A DNA stretch of 64,000 nt from Perkinsela sp. CCAP 1560/9 (GCA_965644495.1 CBFFSA010000020.1:147001-211000); one strand, 5' to 3'; shown: positions 1 through 45,860, counted from the first letter of the stretch. Program-made: numbers and translations. The notes: generated from the sequence alone by a model not told the origin.

Positions 1-1374
1 GTCTGGGCGTACCTGGACGACGTCACCTTCGCTGGTGAACCTAGGGTATGCGCGGAAGCCCTAGAGGCCCTCCGCGAGGAGCTGAAACATCTTGGGCTGC
101 GGCTAGACACCGCCAAATGTAAAGTAGCCACAAGACACAAGGACCTCTTCTCCGAGTTCTCCGGATCTCGTATGGTTCACTCCCTCGGGGGGGTCAAGCT
201 ACTGGGGGCGTTCATCGGGGTGTCGGAGGCTAGGGAAGAAGAATGGGTGCTTTCCAAGGCCCCCAAGGTAATCTCCTTCTTGGGGAAACTTAAGGACATT
301 AGCAGGCAATGTGCCTTGCCCCTCTTAAGACTCTGTGGGAGTCCTCGATGGAATTACATCGTAAGGACCCACGAGCCCCCGGTCACTAAAGAGGCCAATA
401 CCCAGGTCGACAAAGCCGTCCTGGCATGTGCTGAGGCCTTGCTCGGGGGGATGGGCTCCTTGGGAAAAACGCCGTTTTCTAATAACCTCTTCACGGCAGA
501 TTTCCTGGGGACCATCCCCTTCGAGCACAAGGCCGAAGACATGCAGGCCAAGGCGAAGAACGCTCTACAGGGCCGACCCCAAGGCATGTCAGCCAAGGAG
601 CAGCGACGCAACCTCTGTGACGTCGCGTTGGGGAAAGCCCCGACGGCTACCCAACTGGTCTGCATGCGACAGACCCAGCGCTTTCACTCCACTAAGTGGA
701 GGAACGCATGGCCGAACAGGCCGGAGTATTACATGCGGGACCCACAGTGGGAGACTGCGGCCCGTCTCCGGTACTTGGTCGCCCCTACCTCGGAGCCTGA
801 GCTCCAGTGCGTGTGCGGTGCAACCCTCCGCAATGAGGATTTTTGCGTACACGCACTGGATTGCAAGAAGGTTAAGGGGAAGACCCAGGCCTCCCGCCAC
901 AAGGAGGTCAAGGAAACCTTCCGAAACCTTCTAGTCCAGTATGGGTTCAAACCGGACTTACACGAACCGAGGTTCGACAATGGACGGGGGCCGGACTTAT
1001 GCTTCCAGCTGGGACGGAAGACCGTCCTTGTGGATGTAACGGTCGTGAACCCACTGGCCCCGTCCTACGTGGAGAAGGAGGCCGCAGAGCCTTCTCACAC
1101 CCTGAGGATGGCCGAGGCCAACAAGCGGCGCTCCCACGATGAGATGGCGACCGCCCGAGGGATGGAATTTTACCCCTTGGCTTTCACCACGTACGGGATC
1201 CCGGGCCCAGAGACTTTGAACTTCCTAACCAAGGTGGCCCGGGCCCACACATCCGACAAGAACGGATGCATGTCTCACCTCCTGATGGCCATCGGGGTGG
1301 CCATCCAGAGAGGGAACGCCCAGATTGTACAGGCGGCGGTACAAGACTGGTACCGCCGCGGGGTACGAGGTTAG
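1..1374 (+). CDS. 3' part of CRE-clade non-LTR retrotransposon ORF (RT C-terminus, zinc knuckle, restriction-like endonuclease); 5' end lies outside the window
   Basis: Frame is open from base 1: VWAYLDDVTF (RT catalytic motif), KLLGAFIG, CVCG...HALDC, RH, GPD...VDVTV, FYPLAFTTYG, AIQRGNA. Followed by a 28-nt 3' UTR and A15 at 1403-1417. Confidence 0.9.
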   Translation, partial: VWAYLDDVTFAGEPRVCAEALEALREELKHLGLRLDTAKCKVATRHKDLFSEFSGSRMVHSLGGVKLLGAFIGVSEAREEEWVLSKAPKVISFLGKLKDISRQCALPLLRLCGSPRWNYIVRTHEPPVTKEANTQVDKAVLACAEALLGGMGSLGKTPFSNNLFTADFLGTIPFEHKAEDMQAKAKNALQGRPQGMSAKEQRRNLCDVALGKAPTATQLVCMRQTQRFHSTKWRNAWPNRPEYYMRDPQWETAARLRYLVAPTSEPELQCVCGATLRNEDFCVHALDCKKVKGKTQASRHKEVKETFRNLLVQYGFKPDLHEPRFDNGRGPDLCFQLGRKTVLVDVTVVNPLAPSYVEKEAAEPSHTLRMAEANKRRSHDEMATARGMEFYPLAFTTYGIPGPETLNFLTKVARAHTSDKNGCMSHLLMAIGVAIQRGNAQIVQAAVQDWYRRGVRG

Positions 1375-1666
1375 CTGGGCTAGGGGGTTTAGGGAGGGAA
1401 CCAAAAAAAAAAAAAAAGGGTTCACAAGCCAGGCCGAGGAGTGGTCGAAAGACCCGGTCCGGAACGCGCGAATGGTTAGGGAGTCACCCGCACGCCGGGT
1501 GAGGTGAAGCTGAGGGAGACCTTACCCTCCCTGAGAAGTTGAAAAGTGGGGTAGGGGAAAGTAGAGAAGTAGGGAGAAAAGTGGGAAAAGTAAGTCAAAG
1601 GGGGAGAAAGTGAGAGAGAAAGAGGGGAAAGTGGAAAATTTTCAAAAAAAAAAAAAAAAAAAAAAA

Positions 1667-1739
1667 GGGGGAGCATGGTCGGGACCTCCTCGTGGTCTTC
1701 CCCGGCACTGCCATCTTTCAGATGGTACTGACGCCGACC
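1667..1739 (+). ncRNA. HDV-like (nested double pseudoknot) self-cleaving ribozyme, copy 1
   Basis: P1 GGGGGAG/CTTCCCC; P2 GGTCGG/CCGACC; P3 ACC/GGT; L3 TCCTCGT; P1.1 CC/GG; P4 TGCCATC/GATGGTA; J4/2 CTGA (CNRA, catalytic C). G1 is the first base after the upstream A tract. Confidence 0.85.
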
Positions 1740-1872
1740 TTTAACCTAAAAGTGGGGTAGGGGAAAGTAGAGAAGTAGGGAGAAAAGTGGGAAAAGTAAG
1801 TCAAAGGGGGAGAAAGTGAGAGAGAAAGAGGGGAAAGTGGAAAATTTTCAAAAAAAAAAAAAAAAAAAAAAA
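1667..1872 (+). mobile_element. Ribozyme-headed non-autonomous retroposon (~180 nt plus polyA); second copy at 3267-3471
   Basis: Ribozyme followed by the ~100-nt purine-rich 3' tail shared with units 1418-1666, 1873-2082 and others, then an A tract. Confidence 0.8.
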
Positions 1873-2471
1873 CCCGGTCCGGAACGCGCGAATGGTTAGG
1901 GAGTCACCCGCACGCCGGGTGAGGTGAAGCTGAGGGAGACCTTACCCTCCCTGAGAAGTTGAAAAGTGGGGTAGGGGAAAGTAGAGAAGTAGGGAGAAAA
2001 GTGGGAAAAGTAAGTCAAAGGGGGAGAAAGTGAGAGAGAAAGAGGGGAAAGTGGAAAATTTTCAAAAAAAAAAAAAAAAAAACCTCCCCGTCGGCCAGCA
2101 TCCTGTTTCGCGACCGTGTCGCTGTTGACACAGGCCCGCGCCTGCGCCCTCCCATATAGCAAGGGAAGGGTTCACAAGTCAGGCCGTGGAGTGGTCGAAA
2201 GACCCGGTCCGGAACGCGCGAATGGATTGGGTCTGTATTGCTTGTTTTAGTTTTTACTGTTTCTTGTTTGTAGTATATACTTAGGGGAGATTAAATTGCT
2301 AGTTTTGGGCTGAGAAAAAACAAAAGGTACATCTGTGGAAACAAAAAGAATTGCTAATTTGATTGCTTGTTTTCAACTCGTATACCCCCCCCAATGGACC
2401 TACTTGGTTCGTCTACTGGGTCAAAATATAGAGGCAATGCCGCGATTCATACTTAAAAAAAAAAAAAAAAA

Positions 2472-3087
2472 GGGGGGGGGGGCACCCCCATCAAATACAC
2501 TCCTTTTTGTCGGCATCCCCCTTCCCCGTCTCGTCCCATCACCCCCCTGCGCCGCATCCCCCCACCTCACCCTCCCTCCGCAGAGCGCTTGCCCCCCTGT
2601 TGTGTTTCTCTCTCGCGTCCACCACCCCCGTGTCAGCAGCCAAAAGTATACAATACTTGCTCACGGGGTGGGGGCAGAGTTCCTGGCAGATGGTCCCGTG
2701 CTTCGCCTCCTCTCACCCCTGCGTCAGTCGCCCCGTGTCTCTCTCCGCGCTCTTCTCCCTCGGCGTGACGACGTCTTTGTGTTTCGTGGCCTCCACGTCT
2801 CCCACCCTCGTACGGCAACCAAAAGTATTTATTACTGCTAACGGGGTGGGAGCGGAGGTGCAGGACCATACGGGCCTCGGTGCATGCGGATCGGTGAGTG
2901 GGGTAGGGAGTGAGGGAAGGGAAGTACGAGAGGGCTAAGAGGAGTAGGTGTGGAAAGTATGGGGAGTAAGGGAAAGTGAAGGGCCGTAAGTGTGGAAATT
3001 GTGGAAAAGTTGGACTCCATACATAAAAAGTTAGACTCAATACTATTCCCCCCAATTATTTGCAAAAAAAAAAAAAAAAAAAAAAAA
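2472..3087 (+). mobile_element. Non-coding A-tailed retroposed unit of a distinct family
   Basis: Bounded by A tracts; C-rich 5' half with a duplicated hairpin motif; G-rich 3' tail; no credible ORF. Confidence 0.6.
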
Positions 3088-3266
3088 TATTCGCGGAACG
3101 CGCGAATGGATTGGGCATAAATTGCTTCTTTTTATTATTATTGTTATCAAAATCATAAATACTGTAACTTAAGGCAGGTTGAATTATTAGTTTTGGGCTA
3201 CAACATGTGAAATTGCTAATTTGATTGCTTGTTTACAAATCATATACAAAAAAAAAAAAAAAAAAA

Positions 3267-3339
3267 GGGGGAGCATGGTCGGGACCTCTTCGTGGTCTTC
3301 CCCGGCACTGCCATCTTTCAGATGGTACTGACGCCGACC
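3267..3339 (+). ncRNA. HDV-like ribozyme, copy 2
   Basis: Same as 1667-1739 except L3 is TCTTCGT, which turns one P1.1 C-G pair into U-G. Again starts directly after an A tract. Confidence 0.8.
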
Positions 3340-3664
3340 TTTAACCTAAAAGTGGGGTAGGGGAAAGTAGAGAAGTAGGGAGAAAAGTGGGAAAAGTAAG
3401 TCAAAGGGGGAGAAAGTGAGAGAGAAAGAGGGGAAAGTGGAAAATTTTCAAAAAAAAAAAAAAAAAAAAAACCCGGTCCGGAACGCGCGAATGGTTAGGG
3501 AGTCACCCGCACGCCGGGTGAGGTGAAGCTGAGGGAGACCTTACCCTCCCTGAGAAGTTGAAAAGTGGGGTAGGGGAAAGTAGAGAAGTAGGGAGAAAAG
3601 TGGGAAAAGTAAGTCAAAGGGGGAGAAAGTGAGAGAGAAAGAGGGGAAAGTGGAAAAAAAAAAA

Positions 3665-3694
3665 CGATAAAGATACAGTTTCTGTACCTTGTTG
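3665..3694 (+). other. Spliced-leader (mini-exon) remnant
   Basis: CGATAAAGATACAGTTTCTGTACCTTGTTG, resembling the kinetoplastid SL 3' end CAGTTTCTGTACTWTATTG. Recurs at five other element 5' ends. Confidence 0.85.
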
Positions 3695-3738
3695 AATTAT
3701 TTTTATTAACCCACTATTTTCCCTATCAGGGTCTCACC

Positions 3739-6700
3739 ATGCCACACGACGACCTCTTCGATGCGAATGCAGTACCCATGGACGACGACTCTTTCCGTCA
3801 GGAAGAAATTTCGCACAACACGGGTGCTTGGGACCAATTTGCAGGAAACGCACATTTAATTCCCGGTCAGAGCTCCTACGATGAACTCTTGTACACAACA
3901 CCGATTCCCAAACATATCCCCAAACACTGGGCAAAAAGAGCCGCCAAGATCGCCGGAGAGGCTCCCACGCCGGACACGGGAAGAATGACGGAAGATGAAG
4001 AGACGAATCACTCCCTCGTCGTGGAAGCAAGCCCGAGAAACACACCGGAGGTTCCTGACGCCCAAGTACCTTCTCCAAACAAGGCCTCGAAGCGCAAGAA
4101 CATAAATCCGGTACCGATCCCGCAGCACTGTACTCAGCGCGTATGCCCAGCTGAAGGATGCACTTGGAAGACTCCTCCTCACGGTGGGCAATGGCAAGCA
4201 TTTTACAATCATGTGGCCCACCGACACGGAGAAAGCGTACCAACCACTTGGTGGGAGGGGGAGGGAAGATTTCTTTGCAAGGACTGCGGCAGGCACTACG
4301 ATAAGAACAAGGAGAATTCTCACCCCAAACAGTGCAAAGGCCGTAACCACCCCGTGCGATCTCAAACCCCACCTAGGCCAACGACAAGTCTCGAAAATGC
4401 AACTGAAATTCCTCCAGAAAACATGCTATCAACGTTGAGCTCTATCTGCGCGCTGCCCATAAGCACATGCAAAGATGTCCCCCATTCCTGTAGGTTTCTA
4501 TGGGCGAGCATTTTGACACAGGTCATGACATCTGCTGTGCAAGAAAACACAATGGAGGCATGGACGTTACTGGCAATGCTCCCTAAATGCGTCTTACCTG
4601 CACCTTACCGAGGCGGTCGCAAAGGACACACGTCATACTCTACATACGTGGAAAAAAGCATGGAACTCTGGCTAGAAGGGGAGTACCTCTTGCTCTGGGA
4701 ACAGGCCCTAAAGGATCACGCCAAAAAACGCTCCAAGCCTAGAAGTTCCGAAAATGAAGAAGAAAGAGCGGCAATCAGGGCAGAAATACTGTCACGTCAA
4801 GGGGAATACTCTAGGGGAATAGCCGCTCTAACCGCAGCACCCATGGCGCCGGACAACGAGGAGACCCTTGCGAAGCTTCTATAAAAGCACCCAAATCCTC
4901 ACGAAAACCCACTTGAGAACGATCTTCCACCGATTGAGGGTAATCCCCTGCGTCTGGAGGAAGTTTTCGCAGAGGGTCTTCTGCCGGAACAATGGGTCTA
5001 CGTCCAGAACACATCCAGGCCGCCATTTTGGAACACGCCGACAAGAAGGTGGGTCCTCTTTCGTTCCTCACTCGCCTCGTGAACCACATGCTCCAAGGAA
5101 AGGCACCGCCAGAGGTACAACTGTTCTACGCTGGAGCCCGTCTCTGCGCTCTGGAGAAAGGTGAAGAAGATGTCCGACCCATAGCAGCAGGCGAAACCCT
5201 CAGACGTCTAGTAAGCAAAGCGGCATGCGTCGCCGTAAAGGAGAAGGCTGAAACTTTATTCCGGGGAAGACAGTATGGTGTGGCTGCATCCGCGGGGGCC
5301 GAACGAGTAATTCATCTGTGCCGGAAAACAATGCTAAACAACATGGGGAGCGACAGTCTTGTTCTCTGTAAGGTAGACCTCAGAAATGCGTTCAACAACG
5401 TCAGCAGGCCTGTCTTCACTTTGCTCACACGTCTCAATTTTCCAGAACTTTCACCCTGGGTGGAATGGTGCTACACAAACCCGAGTTGTCTTACCTACGG
5501 GAATCACTTCCTATCCTCAGCCGAAGGCGTCCAGCAAGGTGACCCATTGGGTCCGCTTCTCTTCTCTCTAGTCCTTTCTGGGGTAACCGAGGAAATATCA
5601 TCCCGATCAAACCTAGATTCGCAACTATGGTATTTGGACGACGGAGTTCTCATGGGGGAGGCGGCGGAGGTTCGAAAGGCGCTTGACGTTTTTTCCGAGG
5701 TTGGTTCACAATGCGGGCTATTTCTGAATCCGAACAAGTGTGAAATAATAACGCCACCTGCCTCAGCCCATCACACGACTTTATTTCCGGAAATACCTAC
5801 CGCCAAAATTCGTGTTGACGGGAATTTCGATATTCTCGGATCCCCGATTGGGTCTGCGGAGCACTGCGCGGAGTTCCTAATGTCTCACGCCATCGAACCC
5901 GCACGCGAGACTCTCGCAGCAATAGGGCTAATAGGCGATCCACAAGTTGCCATCGCCCTCATCCGCCAGTGCACTGGCTTCTGCCAAATGGTGTACACTC
6001 TCCGCACCACACCCCCCCAGGCTCTTTTTCAACTTTGTAGCCTACTAGACGAAACCGTTCTTAAAGCTGTCGAGTGGGCACTTTTCCCCCTGGAACCCCA
6101 CGCACGTGACCAAATCCAACGAAGGAAACGCCACGGAGGTTTCGGCCTTAGGTCTGCAACACTCCACGCGACAGCCGCTTACGTTTCTTCCGTCGCGCAC
6201 GCCGCCGACATAGACGACTGGGATCCTACAGAGGCTGATGGATTCGCCATTTCGGTACAAGACGTAAACCGTAAAGCAGGAGTAGCGCTAGTGGATCCCA
6301 ACACGGGGCGCACACCCAAGCAGGACAAGCCACTCCCATACTCAGGCCACCATCACAACTTCCTCCCGAAAAGGAAACGCCCACGGAGCACTCAAAACAA
6401 AATGGAAGCGGACAGGGCAACCGCGCCGGAGATGGTCATCCCTCGACAGCAGCAACTCAGCCAGGCTATCTCACAGCAGGAATTCACCACAGCACCGAGC
6501 AGGCTGACCCTCGCACTCGCGCACGGTGGGTTTCAGAGTCGGGTAAGGGAGCAGGTAGCTGGGCTTTCGTGACGCCCTCTAGGAGCAAAGGATACGCCTT
6601 CACACCAACAGAGTTCCGCACGCTGTCCCGCTGGTGGCTGGGATCCGACATCTATCAAGAAGATCGCCCTTGCCCAGCGAAGGGATGCACATTACCTCTG

Positions 6701-7291
6701 CAGAAAAATGGGGAACATGCATTGTTATGTAAGAACGGACATGGCCTCATCACCCGTCACAACGCGGTCTGTGAGCAATTCACAGCATTCTGCAGAAAAG
6801 CCGACATAGCTCCGCAAAGGGAGAAAAGCCTGGGAAATCGTGGTCCAAGAGGGGGTCTCACCAGACCTGCTGACGTGTTTCTCCCGAATTACACCCTGGG
6901 AAGTGGTATGGTGTTAGACTTCGCAGTCACCCACGCACAGCAACTAAAGTATTTGGACTCTGTCCGGAATGCTAGCTGGGTGGCTGCGGGATCTTTCGCT
7001 GAACACTACTCAGCAACGAAGGATAAACAACGCCAGGAAGCGGAGGAAGCGAAATTACTTTTTACGGCCATGGTAGTTGAATCCTTTGGCTCGTGGAGTA
7101 AAAGCGCGATGGCTGTTTTGTGGAAGGTGGGGGCGTTACGCGCAAACGCGTCAAACGGTCTACTCACAGACACTCAAGCCCGAAATGACCTTCTCAAAGA
7201 GCTGAACGTGGCTCTCATGCGCTCCCAGGCCCGGATGATGGTCTCTAGGATAGTCGTCAGTGACCCTGACGCTCCCCTGGAAGGGGCCTAA
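3739..7291 (+). pseudogene. CRE-type ORF (C2H2 zinc fingers, RT, CCHC, RLE) with disablements
   Basis: CPAEGC..HVAHRH; RPIAAGETLRRLVSK; DLRNAFN; GVQQGDPLGPLLF; WYLDDG; CPAKGC..HALLC, RHN, RPAD..LDFAV. In-frame TAA at 4882-4884 (LL*KHP) and frameshifts near 4960 and 6485. Confidence 0.9.
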
Positions 7292-8684
7292 GGGATCTCG
7301 GGAATACCCACTGGGACATAAACCGCTGGTCCGGATGCTGGTCGGTGCCGACAGGGTCTATGCTCACGCCTAGTCCGTCAGGGCTAGGTACCCCAAGTGA
7401 GGTAGGACAAGGGTAGGGAACTTTGTTCCTCCCCGTCGGCCAGCATCATGCTCCGCGACCGTGCCGCTGTCGGCACAGGCCCATTGCTTGCGCCCTCTCG
7501 TACAACAAGAGAAGGGTTAACAAGGCAAGCTGGGAGTGGTCGAAAGACCCGGTTCGGAACATGCATGAGGAAGATGGGAGCGCGAATGGATTGGAGAAGA
7601 CCTCGCCTCCCCCCTTTTTTATCATCAAAAACCCTCTTGTGGCGTAGGTGCGAGGCGAGGCAGAGGGAGACCTTACCCTCCCTGGAAAGGTGGAAGTTCG
7701 GTAAGGGGAAGTGGGAAAGTTGGGAAGTGGGAAAGTTGGGAAGTGGGAAGGTTGGGAAGTGGGAAAGTTGGTTCGCTAGTTTTTATATAGTTGTTAAAAA
7801 GAGGAAAAAGATTTAAATAAAGAAAAATATAATCTTTAAAAAAATTGCTAATTTGATTGCTTGTTTTCAAATCACTACCCCCCCCCCCCCCCAATGGACC
7901 TACTTGGTTCGTGTACTGGGTAAAAATATAGAGGCAATGCCGCGTTTCAAAAATTATAATACAAAAATAAAACAGGCCCGCGCCTGCGCCCTCCCGTATA
8001 ACAAGGGAAGGGTTCACAAGCCAGGCCGAGGAGTGGTCGAAAGACCCGGTCCGGAACGCGCGAATGGTTAGGGAGTCACCCGCACGCCGGGTGAGGTGAA
8101 GCTGAGGGAGACCTTACCCTCCCTGAGAAGTTGAAAAGTGGGGTAGGGGAAAGTAGAGAAGTAGGGAGAAAAGTGGGAAAAGTAAGTCAAAGGGGGAGAA
8201 AGTGAGAGAGAAAGAGGGGAAAGTGGAAAAAAAAAAAAAAAAAAAAAAAAACAGGCCCGCGCCTGCGCCCTCCCGTATAACAAGGGAAGGGTTCACAAGC
8301 CAGGCCGAGGAGTGGTCGAAAGACCCGGTCCGGAACGCGCGAATGGTTAGGGAGTCACCCGCACGCCGGGTGAGGTGAAGCTGAGGGAGACCTTACCCTC
8401 CCTGAGAAGTTGAAAAGTGGGGTAGGGGAAAGTAGAGAAGTAGGGAGAAAAGTGGGAAAAGTAAGTCAAAGGGGGAGAAAGTGAGAGAGAAAGAGGGGAA
8501 AGTGGAAAATTTTCAACTCAATAAAATACATCCCACCTTTATGCCTTACAGATCAATGTTAATGGAGCCCATGCAAGTGGGGCTTGCACTGGCTGGCACA
8601 GATTGGCACTGGCTGGCATATAATTTATTTTATTTTATCACCCCATGCTGAGTCACAGGCCGCAAAAAACACACGTTCCGCCAG

Positions 8685-9254
8685 TTAACCACTTCCGATC
8701 CCCTGGAAAAATGGCCGTTGTGGCTTGCACTGGCTTGCACAAGTTGGAACTGGCTTGCAGTGGCGGTATGCATGGGGTCCAATAGGGTATACTATGCTTT
8801 CTTCCCATCCCTCTGTCGTCTCATCTCCTATATCAGTGTCTTTGATGAGTTGGACGACTGTCTCCATATTTTCATCATCCTCACTGTTGTCCCCTTCCTT
8901 TATGTCGCTACTCTGTTGTGCAGGCAAAGGTGATGGGATCCCCAAAACACTTGGATACCAAGTCTTCGCAATGTTCTTCCTCGTGAGTCTGTTCTGTACG
9001 CCGTTAGGGAATAACAGCGAGTATAGGTTATTCACAACATGCAATCCGCATTCATTCGTTAGCGGTTCTTGCTGCTGAACTTTCGCATATTTTACTTTTA
9101 CGTTGCTTGCAGAGGTGCCGATAATAGGCCTTAAGTGCGAAGCCAAGCTTTCCAAGTAGTCCTGGCGGGCAGTGGGAGAAAATGCCTGGTAACTGTCAAA
9201 TACGGTCATTCCCAATCAGTGGTAATGCACAAGAATGAAATGGCCGTTGAAGAT
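8685..9254 (-). pseudogene. Ulp1/C48-like cysteine protease fragment (transposon cargo)
   Basis: GHFILV...VFDS...QQQEPLTNECGLHVVNNL...WYP; homologous to 57603-57905. Confidence 0.65.
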
Positions 9255-10407
9255 TTCATTTCAGTTTCATACCGGGCGAGCCGGCAGAGAATTTAATTCG
9301 GTTTGCACACATACAACGTGTCTAACGAAAGTCTAATCAATCTTGGCGTGGTTCATCGGACCATGCGGGGTCCTCGCGCCGTGTCCAGATCACATAACTC
9401 CCGAAGATTGCACTTCGGATCATGTGTTGTACGCAGGAAGATGCCTCTTCTTCCCCATCGAACAGGACACTGACTAGTGAGGAGGTCGTGTTAGGCATTC
9501 CACGCGCTCCTATTTCAAAAACTATCGAATAGCAGGGTACATTTTCTGCACGACGCTTGAACATTAGCTGGTTGTACTTGTTTCGTTTGCGCTGATGAGC
9601 CTCAGCGAGATTCTCTTCCCAAGGTACTGTGAGTTCGATAATGTATTCGCATCCATTCTTGAGTTGCACTCAGCCGTCTGGCCGCAACAACGATAGATCG
9701 TTTGCCATCCAGTTCGGGGGGTTGCGCAGTCCCGGAATGTCAAAATGGGCTTTCGAAGTGTACGGAGACTTTAGGACATGAGTCGCGAGCTCTTGAAGCA
9801 CCAGATTATGTCGATATGAGTATCGTCCTTGCTCCAAGGATAAGGTACAGGAGGAGAGGACGTGACGCGGTGTTTGTATTTCTCTAGAACATACATGTAT
9901 GGGGCATGTCGTATTTGAGTGTGATGATATTCCCCATCTGTGGAGAGCGGCGCGGGAGGGGAGAGGTGTCAGGGTCATAATCGATGCTGCAAATCGGGAA
10001 AGCTTATGGTTATTTATTCCATTTATCGCTGCCGCAAACTGTTTAGCTGTGTCAGGATCAGCCGGGAGGTCCCACCATTTTGAACTTAATGAGGCCCGTT
10101 TTTTCAGTTTCTCTAACGTGTTCGTTTCATACTGTTTGCGTAGGGTCTCCTTGGCTCGGTTGATATCTGCAAGATCATCAAGAATATAAGTTGCTGGTCT
10201 TATCAAGCCTCGGCGGCGTAGATTCTTCTCTTCGTCTACCGTTACCCCCCCCCCCCCCCCCCCCTTACTTCACCACATTTAGCCACTCCGCATGTGGTGA
10301 AGTAAGGGGGGTGTCAGAATTTTCGCCCGATTCCTACTCTGTGATAACAGTTAACCCAGGTCAGAGATTGTAAATTTTCATTGATTTCAATATTTATTCA
10401 ATACACG

Positions 10408-13400
10408 ATGGCCCCACCACTTCTATTCTTTAACGCGAGCCAAGTGACTCTATCCTCACCGTTGCCACACGAAACTGTTGCCGTACTGCCCTTCCCCGAT
10501 GATACTTCACCTACCCCATCCACCGCATTAATATTGAATGCATCTAACCATCTTGCTGAGCAGCCGCGGAAGGTTCGGATGGATCTTACCATACAACAAA
10601 AAAACAACCTATGTGCTAGTATAGATGCCGGCAAGTCTGTAAGCGTCGCCGCCCGAGATTACAAGGTCGAGGTAAGCACGGTACATAGAGTTTATCGGAA
10701 AAAAGAAGATTGGCATAAATTTACTCAACTTGGCTTTGGGAAATTGTTTCAGTACCACCCCCCTCGAGCAAATCCAGGCATAAAGGGGCGAGGGAGATAC
10801 GAAGCAACAGATGTAGCAGATTCCCATTGAAAAGAAATCGTATCTCCGTGCACGAGAAATGCCTACCTATGCGCTCGCCTGCTTGGAGTCAACTTCGTGC
10901 AGGGAGATACGAATTCCTTTCAGTGGGAATCTGCTACATCTGTTGCTTCGTATCTGCCTCGCCCCTTTATGCCTGGATTCTACAAAAACAGTTTCGTCGC
11001 ATCAATCAGTAAAATTCATGGGCGTCATGGAAGTAAGAATTGACAAAAAATGTCAATCTTCTTCTCAAAAGTGGCTACTGAAGGCTTCTGAAAAAGTGTC
11101 CAGCTGACCACCCCCAGAAAAAGTGTTCAGCTGGCCACCCCCTGAAAAAGTGTCCAGCTGACCACCCCGTGGAAAAATGGCCAGCTGGCTACCCCCTGGA
11201 AATCTGGCCAACTGGCCACCCCCTGAAAAGTTGACCAGCTGGCCACCCCCTGGAAAAGTGGCCAGCTGACCACCCCCTGGAAAAGTGGCCAGCTGGCCAC
11301 CCCTTTAAAAAGTGGCCAGCTGGCCACCTCCTGGAAAAGTGGCCAGCTGACTACCCCCTGGTAACGTGGCCAGCTGACCACCCCCTGGTAACGTGGCCAG
11401 CTGGCCACCCCCTGGAAAAGTGGCCAGCTGGCCACCCCTTTAAAAAGTGGCCAGCTGGCCACCCCCTGGAAAAGTGGCCAACTGGCCACCCCCGTGAAAA
11501 GGTGGCCACCCCCTGGAAAAGTGGCCAGCTGACCACCCCCTGGAAAAGTGGCCAGCTGACCACCCCCTGGTAACGTGGCCAGCTGGCCACCACCTGGAAA
11601 AGTGGCCAGCTGACCACCCCTTTAAAAAGTGGCCAGCTGGCCACCCCCTGGAAAAGTGGCCAAATGGCCACCCCCTGAAAAGTGACCAACTGGCCACCCC
11701 CTGAAAAGGTGGCCAGCTGGCCACCCCTTGAAAAAGTGGCCAGCTAACCACCCGCTTAAAAAATGGCCAGCTGACCATCCCCTGGAAAAGTGGCCAGCTG
11801 ACCACACCCTGGAAAAGTGGCCAACTGGCCACCCACTGGAAAAGTGGCCAGCTGGCCACCACCTGGAAAAGTGGCCAGCTGACCACACCCTGGAAAAGTG
11901 GCCAACTGGCCACCCACTGGAAAAGTGGCCAGCTGGCCACCACCTGGAAAAGTGGCCAGCTGACCACCCCTGGAAAAAGTGGCCAGCTGACCACCCCCTT
12001 AAAAAGTGGCCAGATGACCACCCCTTTAAAAAGTGGCCAGCTAGCCACCCCCTGGAAAAGTGGCCACCTGGCCACGCCCTGAAAAGGTGGTCAGCTGGCC
12101 GCCCCCTTAAAAAGTGGCTAGCTGGCCGCCCCCTGAAAAAGTGGCCAGCTGAGCACCCCCTGAAAAAGTGGCTAGCTGGCCGCTCACTGAAAAAGTGGCC
12201 AGCTGGCCACCTCCTGGAAAAGCGGCCAGCTGGCCATCCCCTGGAAAAGTGGCCAGCTGACCACCCCCTGGAAAAGTGGCCAGCTGACCACCCCCTGGAA
12301 AAGTGGCCAGCTGGCCACCCCCTGAAAAAGTGACCAGCTGCTCTTTCATGCAGGAGGTGGCCAGCTTGCGACTTTTTTTGGACGTCGCCATTCATCTTGA
12401 GTATATGAAATGCAAACTGTGTTTTTTGGTAGCCAGCTGGCCATTTTTCAAGGAGGTGGCCAGCTGACCATTGTCTCAGGGGGTGGCGAGCTGGCCACTT
12501 TTTGAAGGGCGAGAAAATCATACCTTTTTTTCGTTCATTTGTTATGCCGTCGGCGAGTGAAACGCGTTTCAAAAAGTGGTTCTGGAAGTTAGTTTAGGAG
12601 CTGAAAAATATTCCCCAAACGTTCAAACAGCTGTAGTCTGTTTGTGTGGGGAACATAATCAAGCATCTTCGCGTTTTTTCTGATTTGAAATATCCGTCTC
12701 TGAGCTGAATTCCGAGTCGCATTTTTGGTAAAAGGGCTCTAAAAACTGTTGAGTGTACTCGTTTTTTTTCATTTTTGGAGCATTACAGAGATTGATTGAA
12801 GAAAAATGTCTCTGTTTTTAAAAATTTGAAAAAATCGTTTTTATGCTCGTTTTATGCCCATTTTGGGCTCGCGGAATTAACCTTAGTAAGCGAGTTAGAT
12901 ACTCACCGTATCTCCCTCAATAAAAAATTATATGAAAAAGGGTTGCCGCAACTGCTTTTGCTACGCGAGTCTCTTTCGGCAGTCACGAAACCGACAATGT
13001 TGGGGTACTTTGCTGAAATTTCAGAGCACTTCTGTTCCCTTACCGACAAAGGAAAAGAAAAATTTTGGATTCGTATTTGCACCTTCGCCAATATTTCGCG
13101 ACGGAGTCAACGGAGCAACCCAAATGGTCCCAAAAGACATGGACGAGCGTATAGAAGCCTTTTTGAATATGATAGCTCTGCGAAATTGTGATCGCGTGGA
13201 TACGCTGTAATCGTAACAGGGGACGAGACCTGTGTTGTGTGGGAGCCCGTCAATGAAATCACATACGACACTAAAGGGACAAAGCGCGTAAAGGTTTTAA
13301 CTACAGGGAAGGAGAAGAAGACACTGGCTGCGTGGTTTTGGGGCCTCTCTGTTACGAACCAACGGCATGCAGAAAGCACGTGGGAGCATAAGGTGTTTCC

Positions 13401-14307
13401 TCCGCACTTAATTTGGGAAGCCCATTCAGATTCTGGAAAGGTTTCCAAAGAGGTGCTCCGGGCGGCAGAAAAGTACAATTGTACGGCAACAACGACAACA
13501 AGCGGGTGGAACACAGGAGAGTCATTTAAAAAATGGGCTGAAGCGGAATTCTTTGACAGAATGAAGTATCCTCCGCGGAAAACACTTATTATTTTGGATC
13601 TGTACGCTGCTCATCGGACAGCGGAATTATTATTGTTCTTTCGTGAGAGAGAAATCGATGTTCAATTCGTTCCAGGAGGTTGCACTTCCAAAGGACAGCT
13701 CATGGATATGGCCATCAACCAGCCTTTTAAAAAGTACTACAAGGAATGTTTTGCCTCCTGGCGTGCGTCGACGCATCATGAAATTGTCCGGCCGACGCGA
13801 AGTCTTATAACAAAATTTGCGACTCAGGCTCTGGCAAAAGTGAATTCAGAAGAATACGAAATCGAATTTAATAAGTTGCTTGTTCCAGCACTTTCCAAAA
13901 ATCTCGCACAGATTCCCATAGAATCCAGAGCCGAGCTCAGACTCTCCTCAAGCGTTATCACGGAGTCAATGGTGGATGCATCAGCCATCGCTTCACGCGT
14001 ATCACAACTGAGCATTGTCGAGGAATCTCTTGAACCAAATCAGGTCCCTCGCCTGCCACCGCGCGTTCCTGTAAAAAATCGAATTAGTCCCGCAATCGCA
14101 GCGAAAGCCATGAAGTCCGCCATAGAGTCAGCGCGTAACAGGAACTCAGCGCTTAACGCAACCCCAGTACAGGAGTGTTGTTATTGCACGCGAGCGAATT
14201 TAACTCTACGGGAGTGTAGTGAACCTGGGTGTTTAACGAAATTTCATCACATGTGTGCAATTGAAGAAAAGGGGGAAGAGAATGACAATTTCTGCGCAAA
14301 GCACTAA
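10408..14307 (+). pseudogene. pogo transposase (CENP-B-like HTH, DD35D, C-terminal PHD-like finger) split by a ~2.1-kb insertion
   Basis: LTIQQKNNLC..AARDYKVEVSTV HTH; GDET, ILDLYAAH, VPGGCTSKGQLMD; CCYC..CSEPGC..FHHMC..C. Confidence 0.8.
11066..12500. repeat. 27-bp minisatellite, roughly 45-50 copies, with degenerate edges
   Basis: Unit CCCCCTGGAAAAGTGGCCAGCTGGCCA containing the 14-bp palindrome TGGCCAGCTGGCCA. Confidence 0.95.
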
Positions 14308-17300
14308 CGATGGCCGCAGGTCAGGGCCACTGCATATATTTTCGGCAGTGTTGGGGCTTAGCGCACCTCACCTTCCCCAGCTTTTTACCTCCACAGCACC
14401 GTTTTTAATATTCGTCGTATCTAGGTTTTTCTGTGGTTTTACTTAGTGTCTTGCAAAGACGGGCGATAAGGGTTTTACTGGAGGAACTTGACAACTTAAT
14501 ATTCCCCCCCTTACTTCACCACCCCCCTTACTTCACCACAAAGTATGGGTTTTGGGCCAAAAAGTGGAGGCTAAGTAAGGGGGGGGGTAACGGTATTCGG
14601 GAGCGGAGGGCTTGTAGCACATTCGGGTCACGAGAGCTTTGCATATGGCAAAGAGCTTCCCCGGTGCAAAGGTGCCATAATTGCGATATGTTTGTAAGAT
14701 TCCATCCGCGTGAGGTATATAAGGTTTCACTACTGGTGGCAGAGGCAAAGTTCATCCACTTCTTGATATGGCGGGTAGCTCTTTTTTGTAGGCGGAGTAT
14801 CAATGAATGAGTAAGGCTGGCATGAACAACGAATTGAAAACGCAACTTTGATAGGACGGCGTGTTGGTAGATCCATAGTTTGGATGAGAGGCTGTGTGCA
14901 TTGGCGCTGATTTTTTCGAGCCACGTTATCAGATTTTCGTCCGTTTATTTGAAGAGGATTTTCGACTGCTGGGCCCCTGGAGCAAGAGTCATTCCTAGAA
15001 AGCTGCTACCTTTGTCACATATATGGGGGATGCTGCTCCCGTGAATCAAAATCTTCGGTCTTCGAGTCATATAACCGGGATGGTTTGTGCCCTTCTCCAT
15101 AGACATACACTGTATTGATGTTTGTTACGTCTGCGTCGAAGAAGGAGATCACTCAAGGCTTGGGTGTGCTCAAGAGTCCCGTTAAGCTCCGGAAGAAACC
15201 CTTTCTGTATTGTAGGGTCAATGACACCAGCTTCCAGAAGATGAGTTATAAGTCGGTGCCCGATGATGCTGTGGAACAGTTTTCCGACAGCACTTGTAAG
15301 GGATATTGGTCGCCAATTTTTCGGATTTCCAGTGTCACCTTTCTTGTACGTATGAGTTTCGTTACAGCTGTCTTCCAAGTTTGAGGACAGATTTCATGAC
15401 GTAAGAGATCATTGTACGTTTGCGCCAGTGTTGAGTAGAGGGAAGGGCACCTTTTTAGAATTGCATTTGTGACAGTGTCGCTCCCCGGAGCGCTGCTAGA
15501 TCTTTTCCCTTTCAGAGCTTGGGCGATGTCGTCGCTAGTAATGTCTGCCCATTTCATTTCCACAAGTGCTCGGGGTCCGAGGAAACTGTACTCTGGAAGT
15601 TTGAATTCAGTTTCGGGCGCTGTCAGTACTTTATCAAAATGATCTTGGACATCGGCCAGCTGACACGTCGGGAATTGAGGCGAGGCTTGTGCATCTCGTA
15701 GTTCAGGTCGGCTTAATGTTTCCGCTGCCGCTGTCTATGGATTCCGTGTGAAACTTTCAAGGGCCCACCTTTCTTCCATCTCTTTTCGTTGTAACCGTGA
15801 TTCCTCCTTGTAAATCCTGATCAGTCTACTGCTCTCTTTAATTTGGATCTTTACTTTTTCACGATTAGATTTTCCGTGCGTATAGCGGAGAGATATTTTT
15901 TGGTGTCGAACATCTTTTTCAAGTTCCAGGATATTTCTTTCAAGCGCAAGGGGTCGGCAACGATTTTGAGCATGACCATTGCGAGTGCGTAAGAGAAATC
16001 CTCGTGTTGGGTTGATCTCAGTGGCCAGGTCGTATGCTGATACAGCAAGAGCTGCACATAAGACTTGTGCGTTCTCGAGGGCTTCTGATGGACTCGTAGC
16101 AGGACGCAGTAACTCCGCGCATTTTGCGTATGCATTTTTCTGGACTGTTTCCCATTGGTCATCGCTTAGTTTAACCATTACTTTACCCCCTTCTATTGAA
16201 CGGTGTGTTCGAAACAGCTGCTCCACAGCAATCTGGCGGTTTGAACTTTGTGGAGTGGCATTCTTGTCACCATGAGGGGTTGAAATTGTAGTCGGAGGTA
16301 CGTCTTCGGTTTCTTGAGTCGGAAGGGAAGGAGGTCTAGTGATTTTGCAACATGGGTGTTTGTACTTCATTTTGTCTTTACACTTGTGGTGACATGGGCT
16401 AGATTTAGTTGTCGTAGCTATCTTCCCAGTTTCTGTTTGTCTAATGTTGTGTGGAGATTCTTTCTGGATTACCGTCTGTTGATAGTCCGGGGTATCGATA
16501 GCGTCTTCTTCTTTTTTCAGTGTAATGGAAAGGTGGCGGAGCGCTGGGATGTCTTGCCCACCAAGCCGCTTCCGGATAGCTTTTCCCAGCGAACCCGGTG
16601 ATTTGTATTTGGCGGAGAGCTGCAACACAGGGTCGTTTAGGAGAGTGAACCAGCTTGTATGCCGATGAACGATATCCGGAGTCCCTGTTCTATGTATTTC
16701 GATGTAGTCGCATGCGTTGTTCGATATCAGCTCTGTTATCGTAGCGGCTTCGGCCACAAGGTCGTGAGCTTGAGACTGTTTGGCTAATAGTTTCGTAATT
16801 GCGGCTTCGGCGCCCTGCAGGGATCCTATTCGTTTTCTAACAAGTGCAGATTTGCAGGCTGATTTTACATCGGGAAAGTAATGCCAACAGGATTCGGTAA
16901 TAGCCCGGATTTTAAGGGGGCGTGTCCTGCTTTGAATAAAATGCAGGAGGTCCTGCAGCGCATGCTTATGAGTTTTCTGTGGGTGGCTCGGAGTCATAAA
17001 GGAGAAAACATATAATATAAGAAATCAACAAGGTACAGAAACTGAGGGAGTTGGTCCATCCTTGTTCAGTATACTGGCCAAGGATAGCAACTCCCCATTA
17101 TCTCGGCGTAGCAAACACGCCTTGGCTTGCCTGGCACTGAGATCAGCCAATGGAAAAAAACGCTTTTTTTCGTTAGAGGCCTCCTTTCTCAGCCCAGGGG
17201 CTTCCCACTTAAGGGGCCCGTTCCCATAACCAAGTGATCTCCCCGGCAACACGATTTCATTCGTGCGTCAAGAAGGCTGGGCTATGGGACCAGGGAGCTC

Positions 17301-17966
17301 TAGAACAAGTGCAGCAACTTGTGAGCCTAATTCGTTGGACATGAAATGATAGTGTGATTAAATTAGTTCATAGTAAAATTATTTATAAAAAATAATTACA
17401 TATTCGCTTATTCTGAAAATTGGTAATGCAAACGTTTGAACGGCGGCCATTCTCATGTATTGGTCGCTTTGCTCTTGCATAACTTCCGCATGCCACCTTT
17501 TCTTCATCACCCTTTTCATAGGAATAAATTGTTGTTCGGAGAATGGTTTTTTGGAGAATGTTTTACTGTTACTATTTTGTCAGGGCGCGGAATAACATCT
17601 AAACTGATATTTATACTGATATTTTCTGGGATTTTGTCTCATGTTTTGTCTCATACTTCTCAAGACCATTAGAGCTACACTTTTTCCCCATACTTAAATT
17701 TAGCTTGTATTATTGCAACGCGCGATATTTTGTGCTTACCCATACAGTAATAGTCAACACAATAAGCTTAAAATATGATAATGACTAGTACGGTGATAAT
17801 TTTCTGTATCTCTATTTTAAGAAATTTTATTTATCCGTGCATTTAAAAACAATTCAATGCTGACACACGCGACCCCTTCCCTCACGGCCTTCATCTTAGC
17901 TTCAATCCACCCGAAAAGGGTAGATTGAACCGGTAACCATTCTGTCCAAAGTTCTGCAGGTGTTAA

Positions 17967-19050
17967 TGAGTATCGACGACTACGATAACTGTTTCATTTA
18001 TCAGCGCCTTGATGCGTTGAATGATGATGTCTACTGCATCTTGTGGGCTATACGCTTTTGCAACAGCACGTCCGACAGCGGTATTATCTGTTAAAATAAA
18101 AGCGACGGATGGATTGTGTGCCATCAACTGATTTTTCACAACCCTTTTTCGAAGGCTATAGCCTCGTCCATAGCAATCGGCAGTTCCTCCCCTTGCAAAC
18201 TTTGATATTCAACACCTCTTTCATTTCTAAATACTCCTCTTCGTATGGCAGTAATCTCATCACTCAGAGTGTAAGTAGCCCAACGGGTAGGTGTGGGATC
18301 GACTGTTATGCTCAAAATAGAATCTTTTTATGTGGTATAGATGCGATTTTGCATGGGACCACAAAGGCTTTAATGACAATATCAAATGTTTCATAGAATC
18401 GACAGGACTCTTGATTTCGTCCAATTCCGCGTCCCAGTTGACCATTTTGCCAAGAGAACTCTGAGCTTTCGATGCTCTCCCGAGTCCTATACGGTCCGCT
18501 GCCACTACTGATCCCGCGAAGCGGTAAAAACCTAGGAGGCTAAAGTACGTACGAGGAGTGTATTTCATTGTTGTCCGCACTATTTGATGCCATGGTGGTA
18601 AGGGAGTTCAGCACACGCATATCTAATATCGCCCGAGCCTTTGATTCAGTTTTCAGCACGGCCAAATACTTAGATAGAACAGGTATTGTGCCAGTGGGGT
18701 TGCTTTGAAGTCCTCAAGAGCGCCACACGACGTGAGGTACGCCAAGTGCCGAAACCAACGTTTTCCGAATGTATTAGTTGTGTTCCGATGTATTAGTTGT
18801 GATGGGCAGTGGTTCCTTATTCTGAAGAGGGTCCCTATTCAGAAGGCTAGTCGCGTGCACTGTATAAGGTGTATTGGCTATGGATGTGCCAAGCTCAAAT
18901 CTGCCACCTCCTACGGTTTTTAACTCCGCAAGAGGTATATCGTTGTCCGCTATTCTCCCGCGAACGCCGGCCGTTTCTTTGCTAGAGAACGAAACATGAT
19001 GCAAGACAATACCTGGACCCGAACTACGCGTACTATCTAATTGTGCAAAG
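17967..19050 (-). pseudogene. Decayed DIRS/VIPER-like RT-RNase H remnant (repeated in each unit)
   Basis: Minus-strand fragments VLKTESKARAILDMRVLN (RT), YPLGYLHS, and ILTDNTAVGRAVAKAYS (RNase H). Confidence 0.55.
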
Positions 19051-19092
19051 TCTCTCTTTTTGATTATTGAGCTCTCACGACACGAATTTTAT

Positions 19093-19257
19093 ACCCCCCC
19101 GGAAATTGGTGACCCCCCTGTATAGTTACTATAAACTTTTTTTAAAAACTTTAAAAAGGTTCGGCGAAAGATTTTCGCCAAGTTGATATTTTAGTTAATT
19201 GTTTTTCCGGAAAAAAATCCGATCTTGGTGGACCCTTCCTGTAGATACCGGGGGGTT
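19093..19257. mobile_element. Small MITE-like element (repeated in each unit)
   Basis: Short inverted ends ACCCCCCCGG / CCGGGGGGTT; internal palindromes TATAGTTACTATA and GGCGAAAGATTTTCGCC. Confidence 0.4.
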
Positions 19258-19381
19258 ATTTGTTCACCTTTTCAGTAAGCGGTCGTAGTAAGTAGGTGCC
19301 TCCACAGTCATCCCAGTGTGAAACACAACCTGTAATTGTACTTATTTACACTACTTCAAGGTTAGGTAAACATTGATTATT

Positions 19382-45514: not shown

Positions 45515-45860
45515 AAGGAGCACAAAAAAAGAGCAGAAAGTAAAGGAAGACAAATTAATACTCCATAGGATGTAATGCAAACAGATAGTGGCAGACGGTG
45601 ACAGATGGTGGCAGACGGTGGCAGACAAAAAGACCACTTGGTACACTATTTTTTTCGTCTAGCATAGATAAGCCGCTTGCCAACATTACCTTTTCGAAAG
45701 TTCACATCCCCCCCCCCTGACCAGTCGTTCAAAAAACACGATCGACCCTGTAATATCGAGTTTCTAAAAAATCCAAAACGTAGCACTACGTCGTTAGATG
45801 AGTTCTTTGATAAACGAGAGGAATAAAGCAAAAAAATGTGTTACCAAGTTAAAAATCTAA

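Follow-up and report, generated by a model that had tools for sequence, protein, structure and literature searches.

Results

A polarised array of A-tailed units opens the window

The window, the whole stretch of DNA analysed here, comprises 64,000 nt of Perkinsela sp. CCAP 1560/9 (C20:147001-211000; GCA_965644495.1 CBFFSA010000020.1). Direct reading of the sequence, combined with a scan for A runs, revealed at its left end an array of 12 units, all on the plus strand, in which each poly(A) abuts the 5' end of the next unit. All ten A runs of at least 11 nt in the window fall within positions 1-8514, and T runs of at least 11 nt are found nowhere in it. The units and the right flank are as follows (window positions):

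1-1417, plus strand: U0, 3' part of a LINE-A (C-terminal part of the RT, CCHC motif, restriction-like endonuclease, short 3' UTR), A15; assigned by Pfam RVT_1 on the upstream part, a family profile and comparison with the full-length C5 copy
1418-1666, plus strand: U1, 5'-truncated LINE 3' UTR with X module from 'gggttcac' and private T1 tail, A23
1667-1872, plus strand: U2, chimera of a whole small RNA of about 79 nt, filler 'aacct' and the last 101 nt of private T1, A23
1873-2082, plus strand: U3, X-T1 unit cut at 'cccggtcc', long tail isoform, A19
2083-2471, plus strand: U4, complete X module and T2 tail, A17; 99-100% identical to C43 copies, X module aligned
2472-3087, plus strand: U5, non-autonomous element (about 670 nt and spliced-leader-capped when complete) lacking its 5' part and beginning with about 6-7 extra G, A24; at least 25 copies at 98-99% identity
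3088-3266, plus strand: U6, 'tattcg' followed by an X-T2-type unit cut at 'cggaacgcg', A19
3267-3471, plus strand: U7, second copy of the U2 chimera (1 mismatch), A22
3472-3664, plus strand: U8, X-T1 unit with the 5' end of U3, short tail isoform ('gtgg' then A11)
3665-7972, plus strand: U9, LINE-B, nearly full length, degenerate A-rich tail
7973-8251, plus strand: U10, X-T1 unit cut at 'caggcccg', short tail isoform, A25
8252-8514, plus strand: U11, X-T1 unit with the 5' end of U10, long tail isoform, lacking poly(A), joined to the flank through 'tca'
8511-9254: right flank, copy of repeat R entered at an internal point and carrying a 217-bp insert at 8564-8780

The first-pass annotation had described a polarised array of A-tailed units in one orientation, each A tract joined to a truncated 5' end, and a mixture of unit families; these descriptions hold. 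Two RT-coding families are accompanied by X-T1 units (U1, U3, U8, U10, U11), X-T2 units (U4, U6), a truncated spliced-leader-capped non-autonomous element (U5), whose full spliced-leader-capped version is present in L010, and a small-RNA/T1 chimera (U2, U7). The short units are 5'-truncated LINE 3' UTRs that share a conserved structured module, X. Compared with the full-length C5 copy, the LINE-A of U0 is 5'-truncated by about 575 nt and therefore lacks the spliced leader. U9 has its 5' end inside the spliced leader (3665-3694) and, as assembled, contains three consecutive open frames: the first is N-terminal and weakly resembles LsmAD, the second encodes the RT, and the third, C-terminal, has endonuclease-like motifs. 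In its 3' UTR, the X module is followed by a T1-like segment, A7 and a 3' portion of T2. The array revealed neither spacers nor telomere repeats nor TSDs, as the first-pass annotation had stated, except that two of its joints are not seamless: about 6-7 G precede U5, and 'tattcg' precedes U6.

The array lies between ordinary DNA inside a contig

The array had been delimited to positions 1-8514. Its right edge is correct, with a 3-nt 'tca' overlap with repeat R at 8511-8514, but its left edge is not: the array begins at C20:143,776, 3.2 kb upstream of the window, with a 5'-truncated LINE-A as its first unit. It spans C20:143,776-155,514 in a contig of at least 211 kb, 143.7 kb away from the left end of C20 and with at least 55 kb of contig sequence to its right. 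On the left, it is bordered by an LRR gene and its 3' region, with 63 nt of filler between the LINE-A 5' end and the DNA beside the gene. On the right, it gives way to an internal point of the dispersed repeat R, followed by other transposons. Neither side of the array contains the R segment that lies upstream in the C6 and C10 copies, and its flanks are unrelated to each other. A paralogous LRR 3' region (L008:3119-3617) was considered as an empty site and rejected, diverging after 'gacgtaacg'. LINE-E, a different family, occupies a fixed LRR-gene site; 'aactcaat' at the right edge of the array was rejected as its LRR target, these bases being part of repeat R.

A 15.5-kb contig from a second assembly (ENA ERZ24900291 ctg2985l) crosses the array and both flanks. 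Colinearity extends from a point 0.9 kb before the LRR gene as far as window position 10222, with 0 mismatches and 21 single-base indels; the contig is independently named but possibly built from the same reads. Public reads over window positions 3600-9599 yielded only short Logan contigs, which end at the A runs of the array; one contig of 210 nt crosses position 8514 by 18 nt, under the bridging threshold. The array is thus inside a contig, between ordinary DNA, and is not a chromosome end. Its internal position, its flanks (LRR gene and repeat R) and the second assembly speak against the end-maintenance role that the first-pass annotation had proposed for the locus, and remove a false candidate for a telomerase-free chromosome end.

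Arrays of this kind are also found deep within contigs of 0.65-4.1 Mb, and some contain units of just 1-28 nt between A runs. The proposal that such arrays cap most contig ends with the same polarity fails in the 23 ends sampled, a limited set in which a contig end need not be a chromosome end: an inward-pointing array was present at one of them (C44 left), and outward-pointing arrays at two. At the C44 left end, a 10-mer repeat, (CCTCTTTCTT)n, sits directly on the 5'-truncated LINE that heads the inward-pointing array. The suggested search for simple telomere repeats gave a mixed answer, (TTAGGG)3-4 being absent from the assembly and other tandem repeats being present at several contig ends, e.g. 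(GAGGAAGAAA)n in telomere-like polarity.

TSDs of 9-12 nt were sought behind each A run of at least 10; no multi-unit array, this one included, had one around it. The scan recovered two real TSDs, flanking a solitary LINE-A copy in L055 and an insert in L018. The solitary LINE-A, placed at an A/T-rich site with a TSD of 9-10 bp, has the features of ordinary TPRT. The L018 insert is one long unit with a doubled tail (unit-A15-'gtcgt'-A18), and the primer of the second TSD-flanked insertion is not T-rich (TCCGAGGCAT). Elements interrupted by a unit at an A-rich site of their own were also sought, and the only matches were trivial ones due to the shared X module.

Predicted R2-like proteins and spliced-leader-capped RNAs

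The LINE-A family profile matched R2 proteins over a stretch that includes both the RT and the C-terminal endonuclease (E=4e-58), aligning profile positions 79-773 of 810 with chain residues 409-1129 of 1169, whereas its match to L1 ORF2p was confined to the RT. The C-terminus of a single LINE-A sequence gave no match in the PDB. In the protein atlas, only unnamed RT clusters were matched, and the hits of a word-based homology search carried neither names nor taxa. Residues C775, H789, C793, R804, H805 and D837 are invariant in the LINE-A family, whose domain order (RT, CCHC knuckle, C-terminal restriction-like endonuclease) is that of R2-like non-LTR retrotransposons. The same CCHC and endonuclease motifs were recognised by eye in LINE-B. 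By sequence comparison, the coding units are therefore R2-like elements with an RT and a C-terminal restriction-like endonuclease. Site-specific insertion was not seen, the flanks differing among arrays and solitary copies.

RNAs of the coding units carry a kinetoplastid-type spliced leader and a poly(A). The leader exon forms the 5' end of the element, placed directly after a foreign poly(A) or arbitrary DNA and followed by the element's own 5' UTR. Neither an SL intron nor an SL gene surrounds it, and the elements are not inserted in an SL-RNA gene. The presence of the whole leader exon without intron or gene indicates that the leader was acquired by trans-splicing of the RNA. These 5' ends are stuttered, with a few odd bases between them and the preceding A tail, and 40 of the 131 spliced-leader copies on the reverse strand (about 30%) follow an A10 run within 14 nt.

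U2 and U7 join a small RNA to a LINE tail

At least 40 loci, dispersed and 73-76 nt in length, match the head of U2. At the two loci that were read (L051, L052), the corresponding RNA is preceded by a TATA-like box about 27 nt upstream and directly followed by a T-run. In both U2 and U7, the head starts at the presumed +1, ends with the initial Ts of the terminator and is followed by 'aacct', the last 101 nt of T1 and a poly(A). The T1 part of U2 shows 0 mismatches with the other T1 units, and both units are embedded in the array between A runs. At gathering thresholds, Rfam gave no match to the window, and positions 1400-3700 had no meaningful match even at E values up to 1; ARAGORN found no tRNA, so the U2 head belongs to no recognised RNA family. 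Template-switch chimeras with the same layout are known (PMC2104539, PMC4476161). From their architecture, U2 and U7 are template-switch chimeras in which a small RNA is fused to a 5'-truncated LINE tail.

A T1 tail lineage is confined to the array

Seven units share T1 tails with 0 mismatches among them, yet have at least four different 5' ends. This private tail is restricted to the array, its next best match in the 21-Mb assembly being 89% identical. Such identity, confinement and diversity of 5' ends are hard to obtain from independent insertions spread over hundreds of A tails. In addition, the U2-U3 dimer block is present twice, the second time as U7-U8, with 1 mismatch, an internal A23 versus A22, and different tail isoforms. 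An array-only T1 variant and a duplicated two-unit block point to local growth of the array in more than one step. To produce the U2 junction and the U2-U3 dimer twice, a single unbroken chain would need pre-existing composite RNAs, whose source locus is absent from the assembly.

Discussion

Template jumping as a working model

The array combines the anatomy described above with an internal position, R2-like proteins, spliced-leader-capped 5' ends, one template-switch chimera and an array-confined tail lineage. We tentatively favour, at somewhat less than even confidence, a reading in which it is an internal, recent pile-up of cDNAs produced by R2-like LINEs through template jumping onto poly(A) ends. 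The bottom strand, nicked or broken within R, would prime reverse transcription through the 'tca' microhomology, with no poly(A) involved. The RT would leave its template on reaching the RNA 5' end or on stalling within X, the structured 3' UTR module, and resume on the poly(A) end of another RNA in the same particle. Each jump would write the next RNA with its A tail in front of the truncated previous RNA, so that the array would grow leftwards. The last cDNA, the 5'-truncated LINE-A, would then be joined through the 63 nt of filler to the DNA beside the LRR gene. Since the U2-U3 dimer occurs twice, at least one further round would have re-used composite RNAs. Three elements of this model are inferred: the origin of most junctions in jumps to poly(A) ends instead of nicks in resident A tails, the direction in which the array grew, and the break in R. 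Against the model, a single later deletion could account for both the absent R segment and the absent tail of U11.

Jumping of the RT at one site had been among the options of the first-pass annotation; it is compatible with our data and gains direct support from the U2/U7 chimeras and the stuttered spliced-leader 5' ends. The R2 RT is a proficient end-to-end template jumper with non-templated addition (PMC8857657). The in-vivo chimeras described so far result from one or two switches (PMC2104539), versus about ten needed here, which counts against jumping. That an R2-like RT routinely strings many polyadenylated RNAs in vivo, with about ten joints here, at DNA breaks or free ends, is a broader claim that we consider rather unlikely. 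If true, serial jumping could patch double-strand breaks and occasionally heal chromosome ends (compare the C44 left end).

Alternative origins of the array

Serial insertion into resident A tails ranks close behind template jumping, as a possible though not probable origin. It posits separate target-primed events in which the T-tract opposite a poly(A) is nicked and pairs with the incoming poly(A), always in the same orientation and with the TSD hidden in the A run, while read-through transcripts of the array would supply templates of the U2-U3 type. All the features seen at the junctions, namely an A run, a few extra bases and a truncated 5' end, are equally expected from this process, which weighs against jumping, and it accounts for the strict polarity, the lack of visible TSDs and the A-run-bounded blocks U2-U3 and U7-U8. 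It also explains how LINE 3' UTRs absorb their neighbours, as in LINE-B (X, T1-like, A7, part of T2), and fits the ordinary TPRT of the solitary LINE-A at its A/T-rich site with a 9-10-bp TSD. The window being otherwise devoid of long T-tracts, tails would be the sole such targets, in line with about 30% of the spliced-leader-capped copies following an A tail. However, at least four independent private-T1 events would have hit the array and none the rest of the 21 Mb, and no element was seen split at an internal A-rich site. A-tail targeting is known for APE-type L1 and is not known for restriction-like-endonuclease elements. U11, the rightmost unit, has no A run at the flank, which A-tail insertion could accommodate only with an added deletion. 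Nor were T-tracts the primers of the two insertions flanked by TSDs (the solitary copy and the one whose tail is doubled), the second having a primer that is not T-rich (TCCGAGGCAT). The tail-less U11 and these primers count for jumping, as do the internal position of the array, the stuttered spliced-leader 5' ends, the 40 of 131 copies that follow A10, and the 1-28-nt units. The public runs, which provide short contigs only, yielded no strain lacking single units or the whole array, a point that weighs against jumping.

The other origins are improbable. A relic chromosome end, broken or natural, built over generations by HeT-A-like terminal additions and later internalised by fusion with the LRR-gene segment, would fit the polarity and the junctions between A tails and eroded 5' ends (PMC10088271), the lack of TSDs, the unrelated flanks, the absence of TTAGGG arrays from the assembly and the (CCTCTTTCTT)n repeat placed directly on the truncated LINE at the C44 left end. 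It conflicts with the internal position of the array in two assemblies, with 22 of the 23 sampled contig ends lacking such inward arrays and two bearing outward ones, and with the frequency of arrays deep inside Mb-sized contigs. Moreover, none of the array's junctions retains a relic of terminal repeats, and leftward growth would make U7-U8, with the short tail, older than U2-U3, whose long tail is not derivable from the short one. Slightly less credible still is amplification at the DNA level, in which unequal exchange or slippage during replication, acting between A runs and T1 repeats, multiplied a few original insertions: the identical T1 units, the duplicated U2-U3/U7-U8 block and the common 5' end of U10 and U11 agree with it, but exchange cannot produce four different points of 5' truncation or the two tail isoforms, the copies of the block are separated by U4-U6, itself unduplicated, instead of lying in tandem, and the U10/U11 junction would require growth from A4 to A25. 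Least probable by far is an assembly artefact, a repeat-induced read chimera. The region is repeat-rich and public short-read contigs break at its A runs, yet ctg2985l is colinear across the array and its flanks, though possibly built from the same reads.

Significance and comparison with known systems

About one third of the full-length spliced-leader-capped LINE copies sit on the poly(A) of another copy, and small RNAs are caught in the chains. If serial jumping is the mechanism, the arrays would be an in-vivo counterpart of the concatemers made by purified R2 RT, beyond the one or two switches of mammals and fungi, and a natural system for the growth of LINE 3' UTRs by absorption of neighbours. 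If A-tail targeting is the mechanism, it would represent an unusual target choice for a restriction-like-endonuclease element.

A similar layout is known from the Drosophila HeT-A/TART/TAHRE telomere arrays (PMC5537684, PMC10088271), which likewise consist of head-to-tail non-LTR units of mixed families, with one-way poly(A) and truncated 5' ends set on the next tail. However, those arrays are terminal and replace telomerase repeats, whereas the array described here is internal, in ordinary DNA, with like arrays at many internal sites; in addition, HeT-A/TART/TAHRE proteins belong to the Jockey clade, unlike the R2-like proteins with restriction-like endonuclease described here. The Zepp clusters of Chlorella and Coccomyxa are also piles of 5'-truncated poly(A) LINE copies (PMC3446292); initially observed at termini, most of them proved to be internal. 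They differ by their clade and by forming one cluster per chromosome, as opposed to many clusters per contig here, together with non-autonomous elements and a small-RNA chimera. The arrays of Giardia GilM and GilT, also piles of 5'-truncated poly(A) LINE copies, are subtelomeric. GilM and GilT are placed in the CRE clade (PMC10088271).

CRE1, CRE2, SLACS and CZAR of trypanosomatids are, as here, euglenozoan non-LTR elements with a restriction-like endonuclease and a tie to the spliced-leader sequence. They interrupt SL-RNA genes at a fixed site. By contrast, the elements described here carry the whole leader exon at their own 5' end, after the poly(A) of another unit. Work by Morrish and colleagues in 2002 and 2007 reportedly described L1 insertions that need no endonuclease and occur at DNA breaks and dysfunctional telomeres. 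The array resembles them in lacking a TSD, in its first unit without poly(A) and in the short microhomology at the joint, and perhaps in missing target DNA, as the absent part of R may have been lost at integration or at another time. Those insertions, however, are single and come from repair-deficient cells.

LINE-mediated template-switch retrogenes, such as U6/L1 and the tripartite Magnaporthe WEIRD/Mg-SINE/MGL element (PMC4476161, PMC2104539), have the same layout as U2 and U7; many rounds of such switching are one way to read the entire array. The known cases involve one or two switches and have TSDs, whereas here up to about ten joints, mostly with poly(A) acceptors, would be needed, and no TSD is seen. 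Finally, R2 (PDB 9nl3, 9dou, 8gh6; PMC8857657) combines, like the LINEs described here, an RT, a zinc knuckle and a restriction-like endonuclease, the profile match having E=4e-58. R2 lacks poly(A) and inserts at a single site in 28S rDNA, while the Perkinsela LINEs produce spliced-leader-capped, polyadenylated RNAs and occupy diverse insertion sites.

The array is internal to its contig

The array of head-to-tail, A-tailed retro-units at window positions 1-8514 had been read in the first-pass annotation as a candidate retrotransposon-built chromosome end. Its placement does not bear this out. The window corresponds to C20:147001-211000 (G000 assembly), 143.7 kb separate the array from the left end of contig C20, at least 55 kb of C20 sequence follow on its right, and it is flanked by a leucine-rich-repeat (LRR) gene and by a dispersed repeat, R. 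The leftmost unit, U0, extends beyond the window's left edge; because this LINE-A copy starts at C20:143,776, the array is ~11.7 kb long. This copy lacks ~575 nt of 5' end, spliced leader included, compared with a full-length copy on C5, and is preceded by 63 nt of A/T-rich filler holding a second copy of LINE-A's first 10 nt. Left of the filler lies:

L008:5525-6475, LRR gene (Pfam LRR), followed by its 3' region

At the right edge, a 3-nt overlap, 'tca' (8511-8514), joins the array to an internal point of R. On C6 and C10, R extends further upstream, into sequence that is missing from both sides of the array. A 15,542-bp contig of another assembly (ENA ERZ24900291 ctg2985l) spans both flanks: with 0 mismatches and 21 single-base indels, it is colinear with C20 from a point 0.9 kb before the LRR gene as far as window position 10222. 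The structure is therefore independent of any one assembler; both assemblies possibly derive from the same reads.

Further right than R are transposase-like genes, other LINEs and tandem repeats, the remainder of the window being a transposon island:

11088-12340, 27-mer array, ~47 copies
13237-14307, pogo-like DDE_1 gene
17000-33000, tandem repeat of ~2.9 kb
44492-45646, IS30-like HTH+rve gene
54287-55408, Tc1/mariner-like gene

A different LINE (35124-39940), spliced-leader-capped, with a single 1528-aa ORF and a short A-rich tail, interrupts an LRR gene inside the repeat motif (...tgtctta/aactcaatgag...).

Nor do inward-polarity arrays cap most of the contig ends sampled: one of 23 (C44 left) carries one, and two carry outward-pointing tails. 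Arrays of the same families, again of one polarity, are found far within contigs of 0.65-4.1 Mb as well as on many small ones. (TTAGGG)3-4 is absent from the assembly, and several contig ends carry other tandem repeats. A purine-only 10-mer, (GAGGAAGAAA)n, with ~3,400 overlapping 40-mer matches, stands in telomere-like polarity at two ends, C44:1-190 (L043) and the right end of C16 (L038); on C44 it directly abuts the 5'-truncated LINE that heads that contig's own inward-pointing, A-tailed array. It is also internal, at 397 and 402 kb of C1 and 793.7-794.7 kb of C8. The right ends of C5 (L032), C22 (L040) and C1 (L030) and the left end of C9 (L033) finish in the 18-mer (GACCCTTCTTTTTGTTAA)n, 17-19-mers or (CCCCCCCTGGA)n; the 18-mer also occurs inside C1, directly after the poly(A) that closes an array there (L027, minus strand, past position 5840).

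Units are joined at A tracts

The same-orientation layout itself held up, with all 12 in-window units on the plus strand and each A tract joined to the next unit. Ten pure A runs (11-25 nt) and, in one case, a degenerate A-rich tail mark the boundaries; the ten are the only A runs of at least 11 in the 64-kb window, which holds no T run of that length. As had been proposed, no spacer, telomere repeat or TSD was found between units, but joining is not strictly direct, a few extra bases occurring at two junctions (G's ahead of U5, 'tattcg' ahead of U6). U1, U3, U8, U10 and U11 are 5'-truncated LINE 3' UTRs, in which a conserved module, X, is followed by tail T1; U4 and U6 combine X with a different tail, T2. 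U5 derives, in truncated form, from a ~670-nt non-autonomous element with at least 25 near-identical genomic copies. In the chimeras U2 and U7, a complete ~79-nt RNA is joined through 'aacct' to the final 101 nt of T1, with poly(A) at the end. The rightmost unit, U11, meets the flank without an A run.

Coding units, spliced leader and X module

U0 (LINE-A) and U9 (LINE-B) encode reverse transcriptases (Pfam RVT_1). Against PDB, the LINE-A family profile matched R2 retrotransposon proteins (E=4e-58) from the RT to the C-terminal zinc knuckle and restriction-like endonuclease, and L1 ORF2p in the RT only; by eye, LINE-B has the same motifs at its C-terminus. The N-terminal ORF of LINE-B (3739-4881) weakly matches LsmAD (E=2.9e-4; 21.7 bits, under the Pfam cut-off of 25). 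Contigs from public runs, all short, have a sense codon (T>G) where this LINE-B copy has a stop codon (4882-4884) and one extra base at its frameshift (~6495). Single-base indels distinguish the two assemblies, so these breaks may be consensus errors.

LINE-B starts (3665-3694) with 'cgataaagatACAGTTTCTGTACCttgttg'; the core of this sequence, CAGTTTCTGTAC, is that of the kinetoplastid spliced leader (PMC3795323). The ~38-nt leader is common to diverged LINE families (97-100% identity), each with its own 5' UTR directly after it. In most of the cases read, it comes right after the poly(A) of another unit, separated from it by 0-10 odd bases or by stuttered pieces of leader. This arrangement shows that trans-splicing of the RNA supplied the leader, rather than insertion into an SL gene. 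Exact copies of a leader 33-mer number 287 genome-wide; of the 131 on the reverse strand, where no match was counted twice, 40 stand within 14 nt after an A10 run. In L010, L015-L017, L019, L022, L027, L028 and L043, LINE and non-autonomous copies of full length begin with the leader (about AACTTTAACGATAAAGATACAGTTTCTGTACCTTGTTG). The leader's first 2-4 bases vary among copies, and stuttered fragments occur in some, which looks like RT trouble at a modified cap.

X is ~95% identical among LINE families whose bodies share only ~65% identity:

2083-2227, plus strand, X module (3' UTR; alignment of LINE families)
7427-7590, plus strand, X module
7973-8070, plus strand, X module

Two stems show compensatory changes (GTGTCG/CGACAC vs GTGCCG/CGGCAC; CCCTCCC/GGGAAGGG vs CCCTCTC/GAGAAGGG). 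Given this near-invariance and covariation, X is probably the RNA element bound by the RT. In the truncated units, the 5' ends are concentrated within or close to the 3' hairpin of X.

How the array may have arisen

Seven T1 copies show 0 mismatches over 101-262 nt, with at least four different 5' ends, and within the 21-Mb assembly this variant is confined to the array (next best match, 89%), a pattern that insertions arriving independently at hundreds of A tails would not give. Both the chimera junction and the U2-U3 pair are present in two copies, with one mismatch and an internal A23 vs A22, and the two pairs end at different poly(A) sites ('ttttc' vs 'gtgg'), indicating that composite RNAs were copied and that the array is not one simple chain. 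Elsewhere, one LINE-A copy is solitary:

L055:9954-11854 (ENA ERZ24900291 ctg4015l), 5'-truncated LINE-A, 94% identical, between housekeeping genes

This copy ends in A13 and is flanked by a 9-10-bp TSD, (A)TTAATTATT; a second insert, flanked by TSD TCCGAGGCAT, holds 'unit-A15-gtcgt-A18'. These two inserts show that the machinery performs ordinary target-primed reverse transcription at non-T-tract sites.

End-to-end template jumping is a known property of R2-type RTs (PMC8857657). Together with this property, the T1 pattern, the copied composites, the tail-less U11 and the TSD-flanked inserts lead us to favour, tentatively, jumping chains: synthesis would start from a nick or a break within R, the RT would leave each RNA by jumping to the poly(A) end of another, and at least one further round would follow. 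Serial insertion into resident A tails ranks only slightly lower, explaining blocks bounded by A runs and the composite LINE-B 3' UTR (X, T1-like, A7, part of T2); against it stand the identical T1 variant, confined to the array despite its several 5' ends, and U11, whose missing A run would call for a later deletion. Given its internal position, we consider it improbable that the array is a relic chromosome end, internalised afterwards, and duplication at the DNA level alone, despite the repeated pair, is if anything a shade less credible. An assembly artefact is very improbable for a structure recovered twice.

The jumping chains that we favour have a parallel in the chimeric units. The chimera head (1667-1745) is matched by at least 40 dispersed loci at 85-95% identity, and this ~76-79-nt RNA has no match to any Rfam family or tRNA model. 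In the two of these loci that were read, L051:1500-1575 (minus) and L052:1500-1575 (plus), a TATA-like box lies ~27 nt upstream and a T-run terminator directly after. U2 and U7 share their layout with known template-switch chimeras, among them U6/L1 and the tripartite element of Magnaporthe (PMC4476161, PMC2104539).
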